A DNA stretch of 63,308 bases, counting the filler, from Choristocarpus tenellus KU-1152 (Eukaryota; Protista; Phaeophyceae): NCBI GenBank assembly GCA_964200185.2. It is 10 parts of 10 records of this genome, joined end to end, with 100 filler letters (N's around TTAATTAATTAA, not from the genome) between each part and the next. Parts side by side here need not be neighbours in the genome. Positions count along the whole stretch, not along the records: positions 1 to 15,020 come from CAXNAD020001075.1; 9 more parts are not named here. One strand, written 5' to 3'. Shown in pieces: positions 1 through 12,930 of this stretch. How positions within the stretch are numbered: the stretch's first letter is position 1; every line of letters begins with the position of its first letter. Both the position numbers and the translations under genes were made by a program. Under the pieces are notes generated by a model. It saw only the letters and a program-made list of their open reading frames with translations. It was not told the origin of the DNA and did no database searches.

Positions 1-282
1 AAAGTATCCCGCCTCGGCCTCCCACCCCTGTCCACCTTCCCCCCCCCCCCCCCCCCCCGACGTTTTTTCATCAGATGTCAAAGTCGCCCCACAAATACAA
101 GCACTAACGACTGAGCCGACCACACCACAAATAGATGCAGTTAGAAACATGGCAAACATCTCTATGAAATCTCCACAGTACAACGTACTCCAGACCGGGG
201 GAGAGTGGGGGGGTGGGGTGAGACTAGTGTCAACTCTTAAGCACATCACTTTCTGTTTAATAACCTCCTTTTTCCGTCACAC

Positions 283-3200
283 CTGTGCTTTTTCCAATTA
301 TCGGAATTGAGTTCGTACTGTTCAGCAGGTTGTATGTGTCTTAAACATGGCCCCCATCGTAGGCTCTGAGAAGCGCTCCTAACACAACTGTACCCAGGCT
401 TTCCTCGCCCAGCGCTCACGGGAGGCATTGTCCTGACTCTCTTCACGCGACCCTTGTCAAAAACGCCTCCAATCCTGAGGAAGAGAAAAAAGAAGAAAAA
501 GAAGAAGAAAAATGTGAGAACCCGTCGGACGACGAGGGGACACACACACACTACGACAGTGGGGGCATCCCTCAGCGTCTTTTCCTCTCAAACCAGGGAG
601 GAAACGAAAAAAAAGAAGAGAGAGGTGATTCCACACGCAAACCCTACCCGAAGGTTGTTGTGAGGGCCGTGCAACTAGTACAACAACATGTGCAACTCGA
701 ACTCAGTGAGGCTATCAGAGCGCCACTCCAGAGCCCATTCCAGAGCCTGCAACAGCGAGTGAGAGTGATGACTGCCTGTGCACAGATTGGTCAATGAACA
801 CACCCCACAGGTTTGAGCAGCAACCCTACATCTAAGAGGTGTCTGAGTATGACACGACATCGGAGATTTATCCACCAGAACTCTTCTGCACTAATTTAAT
901 CAATCATTAGAGGTACCTCTGCAGTGGGGCCCTACTGCAATGTCAGGGTACAGTCTATGTTCATACCACAAAAAACACACGTGTAGCTCTGTTTGTCGGT
1001 GTGTACCCATGAGAGATGGAACTCCTTGAAGCGTACTTGCACAGGAAGAGTAGTCCAACACATATTCAACATCACATAACTTTCCACAACTAAACTATTC
1101 AAGCACTGTCATGCCTAACTAAGCCCCCGCCCCTCCCCCCCCTATGTTACCTTTTCTTATCAGAATCTGCATATGGCGTGCTGCTGTCACCAGTGGCATG
1201 TGCATCACCCTCAAGCTCTTGCTCTTTTCCACCTCCTTCCACAATTGAATTGCTTACCATTTTTGACCTTTGGTTTTATTGCGGGGAAAATGGGATCATT
1301 GAGGCAATAAACAACCACAGGGCATCAGAGATGACAACCCTAACCCTTTCAACAAGCCATGACAACTGTGTATTGGTTCAGTCGATTCAAGCACCCTAAC
1401 CCTAAAGATGGAGGAGCCTAGTGCATATGCTTATGCCAATTATGTAAAAACATCCTACACACCACACGCACACATGAAGGAGTAAATGTTATCGTCTCCC
1501 CACCTCCCATGACTGCCTCCAACAACATCACACCAACAGTATTCCACTTTGCAGAAGACTGACAACTGGGTTTTGTTTCCAGGACCTCATGCCTTGGTGC
1601 TACACTAACTCTGGCGAGATTATCTACAAATCCCATTATCAAGCAACAACACACTTTTAGCAAAACTCCAAGCCCCAAGCCTAGCTAACACACCAAGCTT
1701 ATCCCAAACCCTAACCCTAAACCCTAACACTATTTTATCCCTACGCCTACGATCTCACCCAGGTGCACCAAGGATAGCTTGCCGGTAGTTTGTGATCTGC
1801 TCATGGATGGTAAAGGCAATTGCAGACTCCATTTCCTACATTGTCAACACACAAGACAAAAAATAAGAAAGAGGGGAGGGGGGGGGTGGAGAGGTGCAGT
1901 ACATTGATTCCCGCTGTTACACATACAGAGGTTGATATTCAACAACACAACGAGACCACAAAAAATCACAATACTCATGTGAAGGCACATCCCATCCAAG
2001 CACTATCAAAACATTTTTGGCTGGGGTTGGGTCGGGTCCCACCTGTGGCAAGGAAAGGTCTCCAGCAGTACGCCTGGCAAAGGTTTCAGGGCTGCTGTAC
2101 ATGCAGTTGATGTCCCATTCGATAATATCCTGGTACACCAGGGACCTGTACCTCACGTCAATATGGATAGGGTGTAAGCTTTCCTTTGAAGGGGCAATTG
2201 TCCCCTCTCTAACCCAGGCAGGGAGTGAGATTTCAAATGCAAGGAGCTGGTCCGAGATAGAGGCTGCCACCAGGCTTTCAAAGGATCGCGGCAGACCAAG
2301 ATCGGAACAAGTCATCACCGCAAACGCCTCCGGGGACAGCTTTGAAACAAGCAACCAGTGAATGTTTTTTGGGGGGGTTGGAAACATTGGAGGTCATGGG
2401 ATCAGGTTGAGAATCAACTAGATTTCGCTCTACTTACAGGGGTGCTAGCGCTTGATGCATATGCCACGTGGCACTATGAATGCACCAAATAAGAAGTTTG
2501 TTGATCATGCAATGATCTGTCCTTTGCCTCTAGCGATGCATGCACATGTAAGTGGGGGGTGGGGGGTGGGTGGGTGGGTGGGAAAAATCTCCCATGAAGG
2601 GGACATTGCAACCAAGAATAAGTACTCAAAAAAAGGTACATCTTGATATAAACCTATGTGACTGGATAGACATTATTGCACCTGCTGCTCGTGCATGTCC
2701 CACACTAAAGAGTCCACCAGTCTGACTCCATCCATCTCTACATCCAGCTTGATAGGGACCAGGCATTCCCTTGCAACACCCCACAATGCTGTCTCCTGCC
2801 ATGGATCTCCTGCCAGAGCAGCCGCTGGCACATACACTGGCTCTCGCTCAGGCATCCAATGATCCTCAGTTGTGCTTTTTATCAATAACTTGCTGGGGTC
2901 CTCAGTGCTGTCAGTAGTAGCAACAACGGGGTTTGTGTCCTTGACCTTGAGATCCTGAACTTTATCGCCTCCTGAATTATCCTCTAAATCCTTTTTACTG
3001 TTATTTATCGATTGCCGTTCCTGCCCAACAATCCCAGCGACCTCTCCCCCAACCATAGGAGTAGTGACCTTGTCAGTGATTGGAGGGACACTGACATTGT
3101 CGATACCTACGCGAGGACCTGCCTGGCTGGGCTCATTATCTGGCGGAGTTCTCGCAGGTTCCTGACTGGCGGCCATGCTTGACTTGTCAGGTTTTGGGAA

Positions 3201-4145
3201 GTTGACATGACCTTCTGGAGACATCAATGGTGCTCCCCCCAATGGTAGCTGGGGTGGCCCACTCTCCACATCTGGCAATCGAAGAGGTGGTAGCTTAACC
3301 CCCGTTGGCAAGCCTTGACTCTGACGTTCTCTTGTTAGACTATGTTGAACTAGTCCGTGGTCAGGCCCAACTGTCGGTGGTAGCCATGACGGTCGACGTG
3401 CCAAGTCAGACTTTGGAACACTGCTCTCTGGTGTCAAGCGCGTGGTTGCCATAAGGTCACGAGATATTCTGCCGTCCGTCGACTCCCCCCTTTCAAAAGG
3501 AACGTGAGATCTCCGCATGCCCTCAACACCAAGTGAATTTCCAATATTAACTGCAGGGGATTCCACCCCATCCAACGCAGTATGGGTCATGCGTGTGCCT
3601 TCAATGCCTAGCGAGCTTCCTGGTGGGGGACTCGCCAATTTATGTATCTCTTTTCCTGTTCGCCATCCTGAAGGTGTCAGTGGTGTCGTGAAGTGCGCGT
3701 GACGATGTTCGTCAAAACCGCTTGTCGAATCAGCACTTGATGCTACCTTGGGATTGGGAAGTTTTGCTTCGGCACCAACATCGCTTGGGTGTGTCAAGAG
3801 CTTCGCAGCAGGACCTACCAGTCCGCCGCTGGAAGTATCTGTAGAGGGTGTTCCAGACATAGATGTTGACCGCTGGGGTTGACGTAGCGGACCATCAAAG
3901 ACGGATGGATTTGCTGTGTTAATATTCTTCCGAAATTCCTGTGGTGGAACACCAGAAGCTGTGTGACGGAGAGGAAGGGATTGGTGTGGCCACTTCCCAA
4001 GTCCAGGAATCGTGCCTACTACAGCAGGGTGGGGGGATGATGTCGGAGTGGAGGTTGCGGAAGGTTGAGGATCAAGTTCGACATCAATCGAATCCCTAGC
4101 TTCACCAACATCCTCCCCAAAGGACGTAGTGTTCTGGTGATCCAT
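283..4145 (-). CDS. SNF5: SNF5/SMARCB1/INI1-family SWI/SNF chromatin-remodelling subunit with a long low-complexity N-terminus (spliced; 3' end probably incomplete)
   Basis: Phase-consistent GT-AG exons 4145-2682, 2339-2043, 1835-1759 and 474-283. They give two SNF5 repeats (LVPIKLDVEMDGVRLVDSLVWD..LSPEAFAVMTCSDLGLP; LHPIHIDVRYRSLVYQDIIEWDIN..SPETFARRTAGDLSLPQEMESAIAFTIHEQI) and a C-terminal VRS..WGPCL motif. Confidence 0.88.
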
Positions 4146-8389: not shown

Positions 8390-11300
8390 CTATATGGAGT
8401 ACTTGTGGAGTAGGTAATTGGTATGGATTTCACTCTTTGTTGGTGCCCTCCCCTCTACATCCTCATCAGTTGTCTCCATATCCAACCCGTGAAGCTCTTC
8501 CCCTTCCACCTGAATTGCACAGGGAGGTGGTGCGATGAGCTTCTTATTGAAGTTCACTTTTCCCATCAAGAAGTCTTTCAGGAAGTAATAAGGTCCAGCC
8601 ATTAAACCAATGGCATGTTGCAAGACTCTTCCACACTTCTCTCTGGCACCTCGTCTTCGAATGAACCACTTTGCATTATGCTGACCGATATTCATGACCT
8701 GTGCATCAAAGACCAGGGTGCTGTATGGTGGCACCTCAAACCCTGCATACACCTCCCCAAAGGCATAGTCAGATCGTACCTCAACCTTTGCCCTCTCTCC
8801 GAGGCTCATGTGTGAAACGGCTATGTCCAGCCCCCTAAGCACAGTTCCCCGTGTGTGGAAGAGGAAGCGAGCATCAACCGAACCTTGTACCAAGTCAGAG
8901 GCACTCTCCTCTTCTTTGAGCTTGAGTTGGTACCACTGCATCTGACTGCCCTCCATGCTGACCTCAAGCAGAGCTTTAGGGGATCTCTTAACCTGGAGTA
9001 TGGTGTTGTGCAGATGGAAGAGAGAGGGCATCTTTTGCCGAATCCTTTGAAAGGGACTCAGTACAACCCGAGGCTTTTCCTTGATCTTGAGGCTGGGGAT
9101 GAGGGTGATGACTATCCATTGTTGAGTGTTGTTATCCTGATATTCAACCAGGATGCCTCTGTCTTTCTCAAAGCGCTTGACGTGTGCTGTGATCATGCAT
9201 GTGTGTAGCAGAAGGTCATGTTGGTGCGTGATCCGTGCTTGATGGGAAGGTAAACACCCAGGATGTTGTGGTAGTCTATTGCTATTCTAACACCATGAGC
9301 TAACTGATGTTCATTTATTAATGTATGGTCAACTGTTCATGAATGCAGATGATGCCCCAAACTCAGATGGTGTCACTCTAAATCAGGTCACACTCACTAC
9401 TCAAGGTAACTATTGTTCTGGGCGTTTGAATTAAACGGCTGGATATTTGGACAGAGATTGTAAGGTAGAACACAGCATCGTTTTGAGAATTTTGGCTAGT
9501 TCTCAGTTGTAGAAATGGCGTTATAAAGTGGTTAGGATTTGAAATTATTTGAGTAATGAAAAAACGGACCTAACTACTGAGGGCAAAAATTGGCTCAAGG
9601 TAGATAAAGAGATAAAAAAGGTCAACCCTGATGCCAGCAGCACCTCCCGAATTGCCACAACCAGGCATAATAATGTAATATCAACAACACCGCAACTGCC
9701 TAATGTACTTCCTACATCTGCTTTTGATGGTACAGCCTTCAGAATACAGGTAAAAAATGGGCGACAAACTGCAGTATCCTCAACACCTCATCAAGCCCCG
9801 AGTGGATAACCCGACCTAACATACCTCCCTGTAGTATACTATTGGCCCACAGCACAGTCCTATCCCCTAAGGCAACAAAAAGTGCTTACCGTGACAGGAC
9901 TTTTTTGTTGTTGTAAGGCACAGCAGTTGATATTTTTTGCAATGTTTGGCCAATTAGTTTAAGCTCATTGCTTTGAAGTATTACGATCGATTACTACTCC
10001 ATATTCATCAAGCTCGGCAAGGCTCCTGATCTTTCTGGATGGAATTTAGGAGCAACAGATTTGAAAAAAACTCCCTTCTTTGCAGTCAAGCAACTCTCCA
10101 CGATGGTCATATATATACAGAGATTGCTTGCAAAGGAAAATACACAGCTCACTTGCTCCAGGGCCAGTCTCCACCAATGAACTGAGAAATGAAATAGTCT
10201 TGCATGTCAAGAACATGCAAGGGTGTGTGTGTGTATAGTATGCACCCACCATGTTGTATGTAGTGTATGTTACATAAGGAAATGAAGCCAATCGATTCAA
10301 TCAATAAACCTCACTTACCGTCCCGATACAGGAGAGCTGTTGGAGAATCCCCATTTGATTGACCCGCTTGGGTATGATCAAGGCTCATGTTTGGACCATC
10401 CTTCATCATGTGCTCATATTGTTCTGCTGACACCCCAAGGGAATCGTCCAACCCTTTCAGATCCTGCTTCTCTGCAGAATCAGGTCTCTCATCCTGTTTC
10501 TTCTCACCTTCTTTGTTCATCACACCGGAAGCAGAATCCTCCAAAGAGGGATCCTCATTGCTCTTTTTGATGTCCGATGTTTCTGCCTGACTGTCCTTGT
10601 CCGCATTTGACTGACTCTCTAATTCTTCCTCGTCGCTTTCCCCAACATCTGCTGAGGCAGGAACATCCTGGGCTGTAACCTCCATGCAAGTCTCTAACTG
10701 TGGAACCCCAACAATCATATCGTCAGTTTCACCTTTACCTTGTACATCACTCTTCTTGAGCTTTCGAATGAAGTTCTGGATTTTATTTATATCTACTTCT
10801 CCCAGCTCCTTCCCATTTTCATCTAGTAATCCGTCAAGACTATTACTACCATTACTCTCTATCAGCTGTAGGAGCTGCGGGCCGTCCAGCTCTACCTGAC
10901 CGAGCAGATCGTGACTGCCAATGCGATCCCAATCTAAGCACTCGACACGGAGTCTAGACTGCTCAACAGACTTGAGTCCGTCAGGGCCAATGTCTACCTC
11001 AAACACCTCCGTGTCCCACGATGGGCATAGCGTATCATTGATATGTTCTGTGGAGCCGATGTGTTCGTTGTTCCAATACACCTATGGGTAGCAGGCACGG
11101 TCAACTTAGAGTTCAACTATTGGTCAAAGGTTGACTGCAATTCCCCTTCCTGAGTGTATTATTTGCAAGGAATGTGTATTCCACACAAGCCTTTCTAATG
11201 AGTTCAAAATAAATTCTTCTTGTAAATGTTTTTGATGGTGTTGATGTGAATGCCTGCACCACTTACCTCTTGCGTAACCAGATAACCTCTGACTCTTGAC

Positions 11301-12930
11301 TGAAACAATGATCACATCTCTTTTACTATTTGTGCATTGGGATTTGCTGTGTTCCCACAAATGCATAGGACCTCACACGAAATAAGAAGACATGAAATCA
11401 ACAAAATATCAAATGCTATGGTCTTTCAATACTTTCATGTTGGTAGGAGCAATTCTTCTAGAGTTTATTTGCAAGACAAGTTCTCATTCATAAATATATC
11501 ACCCTGATGTGGTCGAGCATGAAGATATGGCTGTGGATCATTGTAGAGTTCGTCATGCAGATTCCAGTATAATCCTGACTTGATTTTCATGGTCTAGATT
11601 GAAGTTGAAAGATTGTTGTGACAAATATGTACTTAAATGTATGCATGAGTTGTCGGACACTACCACAACTTGTTCGGAAAAAATACTTTGAAGCTGCTAG
11701 ATCTGGAGAAATGTGTATGTCTTGACTACCTTACTGCTACCTGTGGCGGCGGTTCTTTGCTACAACAACCTGAAGAGAACACGATGGAGCCTGTTGTACC
11801 TGCTATTTGCGAGTGCCCTCCTGAAGTAAGTTAAACGCCCACCTTGCAGTATGGATCACTCAAGCTGAAGGGATCGGCGATGGGCAAGTCTTCTCCCTGT
11901 ACCACATGAACCAGAAGCTTGCTCTCGTGTAAAGCTACTCTAAGCCCCAGCTTGCCGCTGCTTTGCTTCGCCCCAAGAGGAAATGACAAGCGCTCCTCTT
12001 CACACGTTTTGTCATGGCGTGCCCTTCGGAGGATGCTTAAAATGTCGGCGTCACTGACTAGTACACGCCCAAGGAAATCGTTCTTGGAAAGACTATCCCA
12101 GTCATAAACATCTATGCGTAGCTTAGGTAGAGCGGCACGGTCGTTGAAGAGTAGGGGTATATTTTCGTCACGCAGGGCAACCTGGAAGTTCTCCGACATA
12201 GGGAGAATGAATGTCTGGTTTGTCCACTTTGGATTTAGCGTCATGTACTTCGTGGTGGTGACTCCCACCAGGGCATCTTTCCAGTACACCGCACAGTATG
12301 GATCACTGTATCCCAAAATATCAGCCGCACCAAGGTCGGTGCACCCCAGCAACTGAAAATGGACACAAGGACCGGAGCATCCGCTCTGAAACGTAAGGGG
12401 TTGTTTGTCTTGTTTGCACGGGGTATCGTGCGTTGTCAAGGAGTACTCCAGTGTGACCCATTCATGCATTTTGCTGAACGTCAAGCCATTTCCTTCTTCG
12501 AGAGTCTGAACAACGACTGGTTCCCCCCCCACGATAGGGTGGGGTTTATGCTCATGTTTTCCCCGCTTGCGTGCGTGATAATTGAAAAAGCATGGTTGGC
12601 AGTACGGCCTCGCACTCCCGACCTTACCACAATCGTGGCAGAGGAAAAAAGCTGGAGAGACATCACCACGTTGGACGCATTGCCAACACTGAAGTGGAGA
12701 CTGAACCTCGTCGAACTCTATTTGACTCGCCAAGGATCGATACCTTAGTGGGTCTATCATTGCTACATGACAGGGGTGAACAAACCAATGGCAGTTTCAA
12801 TTTACAATAAGTAAAATTATTATTCTTCGAATTATTATGAAAACCTCTCTCAAACAAATCATATTCTCCTGGTACTTGTGAGGCATGCGTCCTTACCTAC
12901 CTCTGTTCTCTCTGTTTGACCCTCTTTCAT
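8390..12930 (-). CDS. Multidomain protein: B-box-like zinc finger, FKBP N-half, two C2 domains, acidic linker, FKBP C-half
   Basis: Phase-consistent model 12930-12897, 12762-11843, 11081-10319, 9237-8390; the first exon and the last acceptor are less certain. Motifs: CWQC..CHDC..YCQPCF..H..HEH (B-box-like); DILGYSDPYC..YDWDSLSKNDFLG and DPFSLSDPYCKVYW..LDWDRIGSHDLLG (C2); VLRGLDIAVSHMSLGERAKVEVRSDYAFG..VPPYSTLVFD (FKBP C-half). Confidence 0.82.

Follow-up and report, generated by a model that had tools for sequence, protein, structure and literature searches.

The brown alga Choristocarpus tenellus KU-1152 carries, on the minus strand of the window studied here (a stretch of 63,308 nucleotides (nt) from assembly GCA_964200185.2, made of ten parts joined end to end), an FKBP/C2 gene whose single product of ~825 amino acids (aa) is likely to be nested on three levels. 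The chain would run through a zinc-finger-like module, the N-terminal half of an FKBP domain (FKBP-N), strands 1-7 of a first C2 domain (C2A), strands 1-7 of a second (C2B), a loop with a further module, the last strand of C2B, the last strand of C2A, the C-terminal half of the FKBP domain (FKBP-C) and a basic helix. The source is a basal brown alga, and the DNA is eukaryotic and intron-bearing. An initial annotation of the window had proposed a single FKBP fold whose two halves lie far apart in the chain, with two Ca2+-type C2 domains between them, and profile searches, exon order, single open reading frames (ORFs) in relatives and AlphaFold2 models all bear this out. The exons of the gene were searched one by one, and full-length orthologues stood in for the whole protein in domain scans and folding.

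The two parts of the FKBP domain are encoded far apart:

12380..12535, minus strand: FKBP N-half, residues 76-127, equivalent to FKBP12 residues 1-51 (strands beta1, beta4 and beta5); from profile searches and orthologue models
8684..8854, minus strand: FKBP C-half, equivalent to FKBP12 residues 52-107 (helix, beta2 and beta3); from Pfam and a profile run against solved structures

The C-half (8851-8687) matches positions 42-93 of the 94 in Pfam FKBP_C (PF00254) with E 7.6e-11 and 42.6 bits, where the cut-off is 21.1; the last-exon ORF as a whole reaches 40.9 bits with the same family, and a family profile of this half aligns to FKBP12 residues 54-106 (E ~1e-12). Three other brown-alga contigs show similar half-matches in their last-exon ORFs, as do seven of the ten full-length relatives scanned. 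FKBP_C is present in 24 of 36 full-length relatives scanned, and in every relative scanned the match lies after the C2 domains and is limited to profile positions 38-94. The N-half alone (47 aa, 12520-12380) has no Pfam match, which would be in keeping with an N-half that resembles FKBP by chance and a C-half that is an isolated FKBP fragment. However, the N-half is among the best-conserved parts of exon 1, and a profile of it from 15 brown-alga homologues, searched against the sequences of solved structures, recovered FKBPs in nearly all of the 60 matches listed (best FKBP E 4e-4), aligned in register to the first 30-47 residues of FKBP12-type chains. With a family-wide profile (25 sequences, that of the window first) FKBPs made up all 60 of the matches listed, with E down to 6e-8, and profile positions 9-58 aligned to FKBP12 residues 1-51. 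One relative (P0034) keeps LDSSRD at the site of FDSSRD in FKBP12, and a complete FKBP fold is built in both of the orthologue models described below. Against this almost exclusive recovery of FKBPs in the correct register, chance resemblance has next to no probability.

At the sequence level the halves are complementary, FKBP12 residues 1-51 and 54-106 being separated by a two-residue seam. The initial annotation had read the N-half at 12520-12380 and the C-half at 8851-8687, with no overlap and no missing piece, and all three readings hold; the insert between the halves, which it put at ~560 aa, measures ~545 aa. The break lies between the equivalents of Gly51 and Glu54 of FKBP12, in the loop that joins beta5 to the helix and adjoins the ligand pocket. 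Another FKBP-like exon, at a different site of this genome (L002, G000:C3796:2796-2957), is 39% identical to the C-half (E 3.5e-5); no close paralogue of the last exon was found in the assembly.

The gene has three coding exons (12760-11843, 11081-10319 and 9186-8390, all on the minus strand), and not the four of the initial annotation. The spliced product is composed of 306 + 254 residues, one split codon and 264 residues:

11843..12760, minus strand: coding exon 1, 306 codons from the ATG at 12760, ending after Lys306 at the donor GT 11842-11841; zinc finger, FKBP N-half, C2A strands 1-7 and the start of C2B
11082..11842, minus strand: intron 1, GT..AG, phase 0, read from the sequence
10319..11081, minus strand: coding exon 2, ending in phase 1 before GTAAGT at 10318
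9187..10318, minus strand: intron 2, GT..AG, phase 1, holding both mini-exons of the deposited model
8390..9186, minus strand: coding exon 3, with the stop codon of the gene at 8392-8390

The product of exon 1 is identical (100%) to residues 1-306 of the deposited C. tenellus protein P0023 (CAM9255732.1, 'unnamed protein product', 651 aa). It is 60-67% identical to 20 brown-alga homologues, all of which share the N-terminal starting motif, and the 22 homologues found in a word search with this exon, among them one from Ectocarpus, are 43-67% identical. The intron 1 junction is supported by P0023 and by the Ectocarpus proteins P0016 and P0024. For the last exon, two AG acceptors fit phase 1 (9238|9237 and 9187|9186). 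In P0024, from Ectocarpus siliculosus, the junction reads YRD-A-S-V-Q-R, and the window gives its counterpart, YRD-A-H-V-K-R, only when 10319 is joined to 9186; because P0024 aligns across the junction, the 10319|9186 splice can be fixed, and 9187|9186 is most likely the acceptor used. The acceptor 9238|9237, implied by the last exon of the initial annotation (8390-9237), adds 17 unconserved residues and breaks the conserved junction, and it was rejected.

The deposited P0023 maps to 12760-11840, 11090-10317, 10183-10058 and 9885-9742, and thus ends in two small exons without the conserved FKBP-C exon. If this annotation were right, the protein would consist of 651 aa in which exon 2 is followed by the two small exons, and the FKBP-C exon would be a relic or belong to another transcript; the mapping of P0023 itself to the mini-exons speaks for it. 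However, the mini-exon products have no counterpart in P0024, which itself has no match inside intron 2. Exon 3, by contrast, has an undisrupted reading frame (265 codons) whose product is 54-57% identical to its orthologues on three brown-alga contigs and has every residue that is invariant in the family. It is in phase with the exon 2 donor, and joining the two gives the Ectocarpus junction. Without exon 3, moreover, the FKBP N-half, C2A and C2B would each miss strands. The deposited annotation is therefore very unlikely to be correct, and its 651-aa model is probably truncated, the last exon having been replaced by two unconserved mini-exons. In an exact look-up in the protein collection none of the three exon ORFs was present, P0023 stood alone in its cluster and no spliced transcript product from C. 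tenellus was found.

AlphaFold2 models were built with family alignments for two full-length orthologues, P0024 from Ectocarpus and P0055 from the pelagophyte Chrysophaeum. The P0024 model (1010 aa) has a mean predicted local distance difference test (pLDDT) score of 65.6 and a predicted template modelling (pTM) score of 0.56, its structured parts lying mostly at pLDDT 85-96; the P0055 model (652 aa) has a mean pLDDT of 80.6 and a pTM of 0.73, with residues 423-462 below 50. Each was aligned to ~48,000 solved chains, and for both the top structural matches are FKBPs (residues aligned, root-mean-square deviation (rmsd), Z score and range in the model):

FKBP12.6 (7vml_G) against P0024: 107/107 residues, rmsd 1.1 Å, Z 18.9, range 82..926
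FKBP12.6 (7vml_G) against P0055: 107/107 residues, rmsd 1.2 Å, Z 17.9, range 82..563
fungal FKBP12 (6tz7_C) against P0024: 117/117 residues, rmsd 2.3 Å, Z 20.1, range 76..930
fungal FKBP12 (6tz7_C) against P0055: 117/117 residues, rmsd 2.5 Å, Z 18.9, range 76..567

Both models contain the complete FKBP fold, a five-stranded sheet round one helix, and from this complete coverage it follows that both halves form one domain in them. The structure prediction proposed with the initial annotation thus gave a single packed FKBP fold in the two orthologues. The window's own halves, folded as two separate chains, reached an interaction prediction score from aligned errors (ipSAE) of 0.35, compared with 0.02 for the best control, a mark attained by 51 of the 78 solved complexes and by 2 of the 108 mismatched pairs; passes up to 0.60 count as weak. 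The runs of this two-chain fold, which did not use the family alignments, agree in at least 74% of contacts, and the partner pLDDT is at least 56.

Between the two FKBP halves lie the C2 domains and the parts that they enclose:

11975..12367, minus strand: main body of C2A, about residues 132-262, seven contiguous strands; coordinates transferred from the Ectocarpus model by alignment
11843..11950, minus strand: first part of C2B, about residues 271-306, strands 1-2 and Ca2+ loop 1 (D296, D302), ending at the exon 1 donor
10881..11081, minus strand: second part of C2B, about residues 307-373, strands 3-7 and Ca2+ loop 3 (D356, D358, D364)
10319..10880, minus strand: insert within C2B, about residues 374-560, helices and then an acidic loop of low complexity, probably disordered; reaches the exon 2 donor
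8942..9186, minus strand: brown-alga module at the start of exon 3, still part of the insert within C2B
8924..8941, minus strand: return strand 1, MQWYQL, last strand of C2B
8855..8884, minus strand: return strand 2, GSVDARFLFH, last strand of C2A, running straight into the FKBP C-half

Pfam C2 (PF00168, cut-off 22) matches exon 1 in two stretches with 66.7 bits and exon 2 with 36.3 bits; the first part of C2B is based on the second of these stretches together with the sequence and the secondary structure of the Ectocarpus model. Both domains carry the five Asp residues that the initial annotation had noted in each, D147, D153, D220, D222 and D228 in C2A and D296, D302, D356, D358 and D364 in C2B, spaced as D-x5-D in loop 1 and D-x-D-x5-D in loop 3. 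The C2A ligand positions are Asp in 33-41 of 42 family members.

The order in which the strands of the C2 domains appear suggests the nesting. In the structural alignments a first group of C2 domains, of topology-II type (intersectin-2, Munc13-1 C2B, PKC-epsilon and extended synaptotagmins), spans 136..871 in P0024 and 140..508 in P0055, and a second, of synaptotagmin type (synaptotagmin-7 C2B, rabphilin, RIM2 and PI3K-C2), spans 274..848 and 277..485. These ranges end on the two short strands that precede the FKBP C-half (842-845 and 861-869 in P0024; 479-482 and 498-506 in P0055). We infer the chain order FKBP-N, C2A(1-7), C2B(1-7), loop, C2B(8), C2A(8), FKBP-C, a predicted three-level nest with the layout FKBP[C2A[C2B[acidic disordered loop]]], in which each C2 domain would be completed by a strand from the return path. 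In exon 2 the C2B match covers Pfam positions 32-91 of 104, without the last strand of the profile, and in every species it ends at position 88-93 of 104; this shortfall fits a return strand that completes C2B. In return strand 1, W101 and L104 are invariant in alignment A3, and one Arg in return strand 2 is invariant across the family. The 128 aa preceding the C-half have no Pfam match. The closing pair of strands described in the initial annotation is thus present, but it does not form a C2-like unit of its own, its members being the last strands first of C2B and then of C2A; a third, degenerate C2 domain before the C-half was rejected, as C2B and C2A account for both strands.

FKBP and C2A are joined in the models by connectors of ~6 residues on each side, so that FKBP, C2A and C2B should fold as one interdependent, rigidly coupled unit. 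The family-invariant residues cluster at the domain junctions and not in the FKBP pocket (alignments A7 and A8). The junction motifs are G-x-S-G-x-C-x-H-x-Q after the N-half (P0024 133-142) and R-x5-R-G before the C-half, and M-x-L-G-E and R-x-D are invariant within the C-half (P0055 502-535, a region that includes R-x5-R-G).

The initial annotation had suggested a search for the same domain order in stramenopiles, and the split is kept in bolidophytes and a pelagophyte as well as in brown algae. Three brown-alga contigs (L004, L005 and L006) have the same three ORFs (exon 1, C2 ORF and FKBP_C ORF) in the same order and on the same strand, with short introns between them, and a metagenome contig (L003, 43% identical) has the same order with the FKBP-C part split by an extra intron. 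This metagenome gene also has a long Ser/Asn-rich low-complexity insert inside C2A (L003:4248-8052), and among the genes next to it are one for actin and a dienelactone-hydrolase-like one. An exhaustive profile-free search with exon 1 gave ~35 full-length proteins of 590-1330 aa that open with the zinc finger, the FKBP N-half and C2. Named members come from the brown algae Ectocarpus, Scytosiphon and Choristocarpus, the bolidophytes Triparma, Tetraparma and Bolidomonas, and the pelagophyte Chrysophaeum. A large further clade, represented only in metagenome and run assemblies (860-1330 aa; P0052, P0062, P0066, P0076, P0093 and others), has the same split FKBP.

FKBP12 that was split by engineering can regain a native-like fold from its fragments (bioRxiv 10.1101/2020.03.16.994277). 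This lends plausibility to a discontinuous FKBP in nature, and it would also suit halves that are separate polypeptides, from two genes or from processing, complementing each other in trans. In relatives, however, both halves lie in single uninterrupted ORFs (809 aa in a contig of 2660 nt and 823 aa in one of 2871 nt, barely longer than the ORF in each case), and a relative of 1145 aa has both in one reading frame of a 3614-nt MMETSP transcript. Exon order and junction are conserved, and a separate C-half gene lacks a supporting start codon or promoter evidence. Complementation in trans is accordingly highly improbable in this family.

Several points weigh against the picture of one nested protein. 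The deposited model has a different 3' end from the three-exon model, and the packing of the halves is predicted from orthologues that are 58-62% (Ectocarpus) and ~30% (Chrysophaeum) identical to the window protein, while the two-chain prediction for the window's own halves gives weak support. The nesting of the C2 strands was read from the first and last aligned residues and from secondary-structure lists rather than from coordinates, and it is best regarded as a predicted arrangement. Finally, among the 42 members the Ca2+ ligands of C2B are kept in brown algae and degenerate elsewhere.

Judged from its sequence, the FKBP pocket is degenerate, and more so in Choristocarpus than in its relatives. 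The canonical set of pocket residues (Tyr26, Phe36, Asp37, Trp59, Tyr82 and Phe99 of FKBP12) is incomplete in the window: the equivalents of Tyr26 and Phe99 are kept, Trp59 is replaced by Leu and Tyr82 by Phe. The 40s loop (12395-12430, minus strand) is five residues shorter than in all other brown-alga homologues, which have an I-E-D-T-F type motif, and this loss removes the equivalents of Phe36 and Asp37. The alignment of the C-half confirms the Leu and Phe replacements that the initial annotation had pointed out, and the FDSS motif that it found absent belongs to the shortened stretch. Across the 42 members the Trp59 position is Leu in 24, Ile in 8, Val in 2, Arg in 1, Ala in 1 and a gap in 6, and in none is it Trp; Tyr82 is Tyr in 18 and Phe in 12, and Phe99 is mostly kept. 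FKBP domains with such pocket substitutions are usually weak or inactive. The weakened catalytic pocket expected from the outset is consistent with these replacements.

The likely role of the protein is that of a Ca2+- and membrane-recruited FKBP-like binding module rather than an efficient isomerase. By analogy with synaptotagmin-type C2 domains, C2A, together with C2B in brown algae, would sense Ca2+ and dock on acidic phospholipid. The shared strands and short connectors seen in the models may tie the FKBP-like pocket, like the zinc finger, rigidly to the C2 domains, so that rising Ca2+ would bring both to the membrane, and the acidic disordered loop would project from C2B. The hinge or clamp put forward in the initial annotation is likewise a putative function. 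The pocket, with Leu, Ile or Val for Trp59 and here a short 40s loop, seems more likely to hold a proline-containing partner than to catalyse isomerisation. The same architecture could instead house an active, Ca2+-regulated prolyl isomerase: the FKBP fold is complete, the window retains Tyr26 and Phe99, many relatives retain Tyr82, and the orthologues in public databases carry the name 'peptidylprolyl isomerase', although this name is automatic. With Leu, Ile or Val at the Trp59 position in all members that have a residue there except one Arg and one Ala, and with Phe for Tyr82 and the shortened loop in Choristocarpus, such activity appears unlikely, and a binding module is preferred. A further idea, which we regard as doubtful and quite improbable, is that the interleaved strands turn the whole unit into an allosteric switch, in which the effect of Ca2+ and membrane binding at the loops of C2A (and C2B) would travel along both short connectors to the FKBP 50s loop that lines the pocket; only at a membrane loaded with Ca2+ would the pocket then open, or close, for a client that contains proline. 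If true, this would be a natural Ca2+-gated FKBP built by domain nesting, without an added regulatory subunit.

The split FKBP with nested C2 domains is apparently undescribed. No description of this layout was found in the literature searched, and in the brown-alga genome paper FKBP and C2 domains both go unmentioned. When the Chrysophaeum model was compared by shape with the ESM Atlas, all that matched were ordinary C2 tandems (template modelling score at most 0.34), with no cluster that has the whole architecture, and a feature search there with P0076 gave no usable match. The novelty suggested by the initial annotation holds for the literature searched but not for the sequences, since orthologues are already in public databases under automatic names. 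Domain-based annotation sees just 'half an FKBP' in every member, and the family is thus easily misread.

In construction the nearest analogue is the split PH domain of PLC-gamma and the syntrophins, a small signalling fold that is cut by inserted signalling domains and reassembled from distant halves; the host fold and the inserted domains differ from those described here, and nesting through shared return strands is not known from them. The tandem C2A-C2B of synaptotagmin type likewise has two adjacent C2 domains with the five-Asp Ca2+ motif, and the best C2 structural matches to the models are synaptotagmin-7 C2B, rabphilin, Munc13 and extended synaptotagmins (Z 14-17). In contrast to these tandems, the last strand of each C2 domain is predicted to come from far downstream, with C2B inside C2A and the pair inside FKBP. 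Other FKBPs are linked to Ca2+, such as FKBP14/FKBP22 with their EF-hands and the calmodulin-regulated FKBP38. FKBP14 and FKBP38 are among the structural matches to the models. In these proteins the sensor is appended or acts in trans, whereas in Choristocarpus it is of C2 type and lies inside the FKBP fold.

An FKBP sequence made discontinuous by a domain near the active site is also found in SlyD (described in PMC5034536) and the archaeal insert-in-flap (IF) FKBPs, where the FKBP fold hosts a domain in a loop by the active site. The IF domain of the SlyD type is a small chaperone domain in the flap (80s loop), whereas the Choristocarpus break lies at 51/54 of FKBP12, the C-half is continuous through the flap and no insert is found there. 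The Choristocarpus insert is also of another order, its ~545 aa being five times the size of the host and comprising two nested C2 domains and a disordered loop. Nested insertions of the form A1-B1-C-B2-A2 are known from a survey of domain insertions (2026), in which C2 (PF00168) is a 'generalist inserter' with 17 host groups and inserts are consistently smaller than their hosts (PMC13114784). FKBP does not appear in the text of that survey (PMC13114784). An insert larger than its host, such as the one described here, runs counter to the trend, and each Choristocarpus C2 domain alone exceeds the FKBP host in size. That a 108-residue FKBP fold accommodates an insert five times its size, itself nested two deep, shows the tolerance of a break at the 50s loop.

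What emerges is a conserved, uncharacterised Ca2+-linked protein family of brown algae, bolidophytes and pelagophytes. Few signalling domains have been studied as thoroughly as FKBP and C2, and FKBP12 is the standard tool of chemically induced dimerisation. The break point may offer a natural template for the engineering of switchable FKBPs.

Within the insert of C2B, the length of the acidic loop ranges between species from tens to hundreds of residues, and its counterpart in the Ectocarpus model has a pLDDT below 50 over 426-756. The module at 8942-9186 comprises 80 residues after this loop and is 54-57% identical to three brown-alga contigs. In the P0024 model it forms a small beta unit and a long helix (strands 759-783, helix 798-836, pLDDT ~70-76). 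The pelagophyte protein lacks this module, and Pfam gives no match to it. Two further parts lie at the ends of the chain:

12539..12688, minus strand: zinc-finger-like module, residues 25-74, Cys/His-rich and B-box-like
8390..8683, minus strand: C-terminal tail, weakly conserved, ending in the stop codon

In the zinc-finger-like module C25, C28, C41, C44, C54, C57, H62 and H71 are invariant or nearly so. The Pfam ANCHR-like B-box scores 10.3-10.7 bits on it (E 0.6-0.8, against a cut-off of 27) and reaches E 0.001-0.003 in 4 of 36 relatives, and a family profile of the module run against solved structures gives a mix of B-box, PHD, ZZ and ribosomal zinc ribbons (E 0.01-1). The C-terminal tail is a basic helix in the orthologue models (helices 931-976 in P0024 and 567-597 in P0055), and no transmembrane anchor was seen. 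Downstream of the gene, the neighbour at 1917-4145 (minus strand) is a chromatin-remodelling gene of the SNF5/SMARCB1/INI1 type, with ORFs 4145-2673 and 2387-1917 that match Pfam SNF5 at E 1.6e-5 and 3.2e-17.

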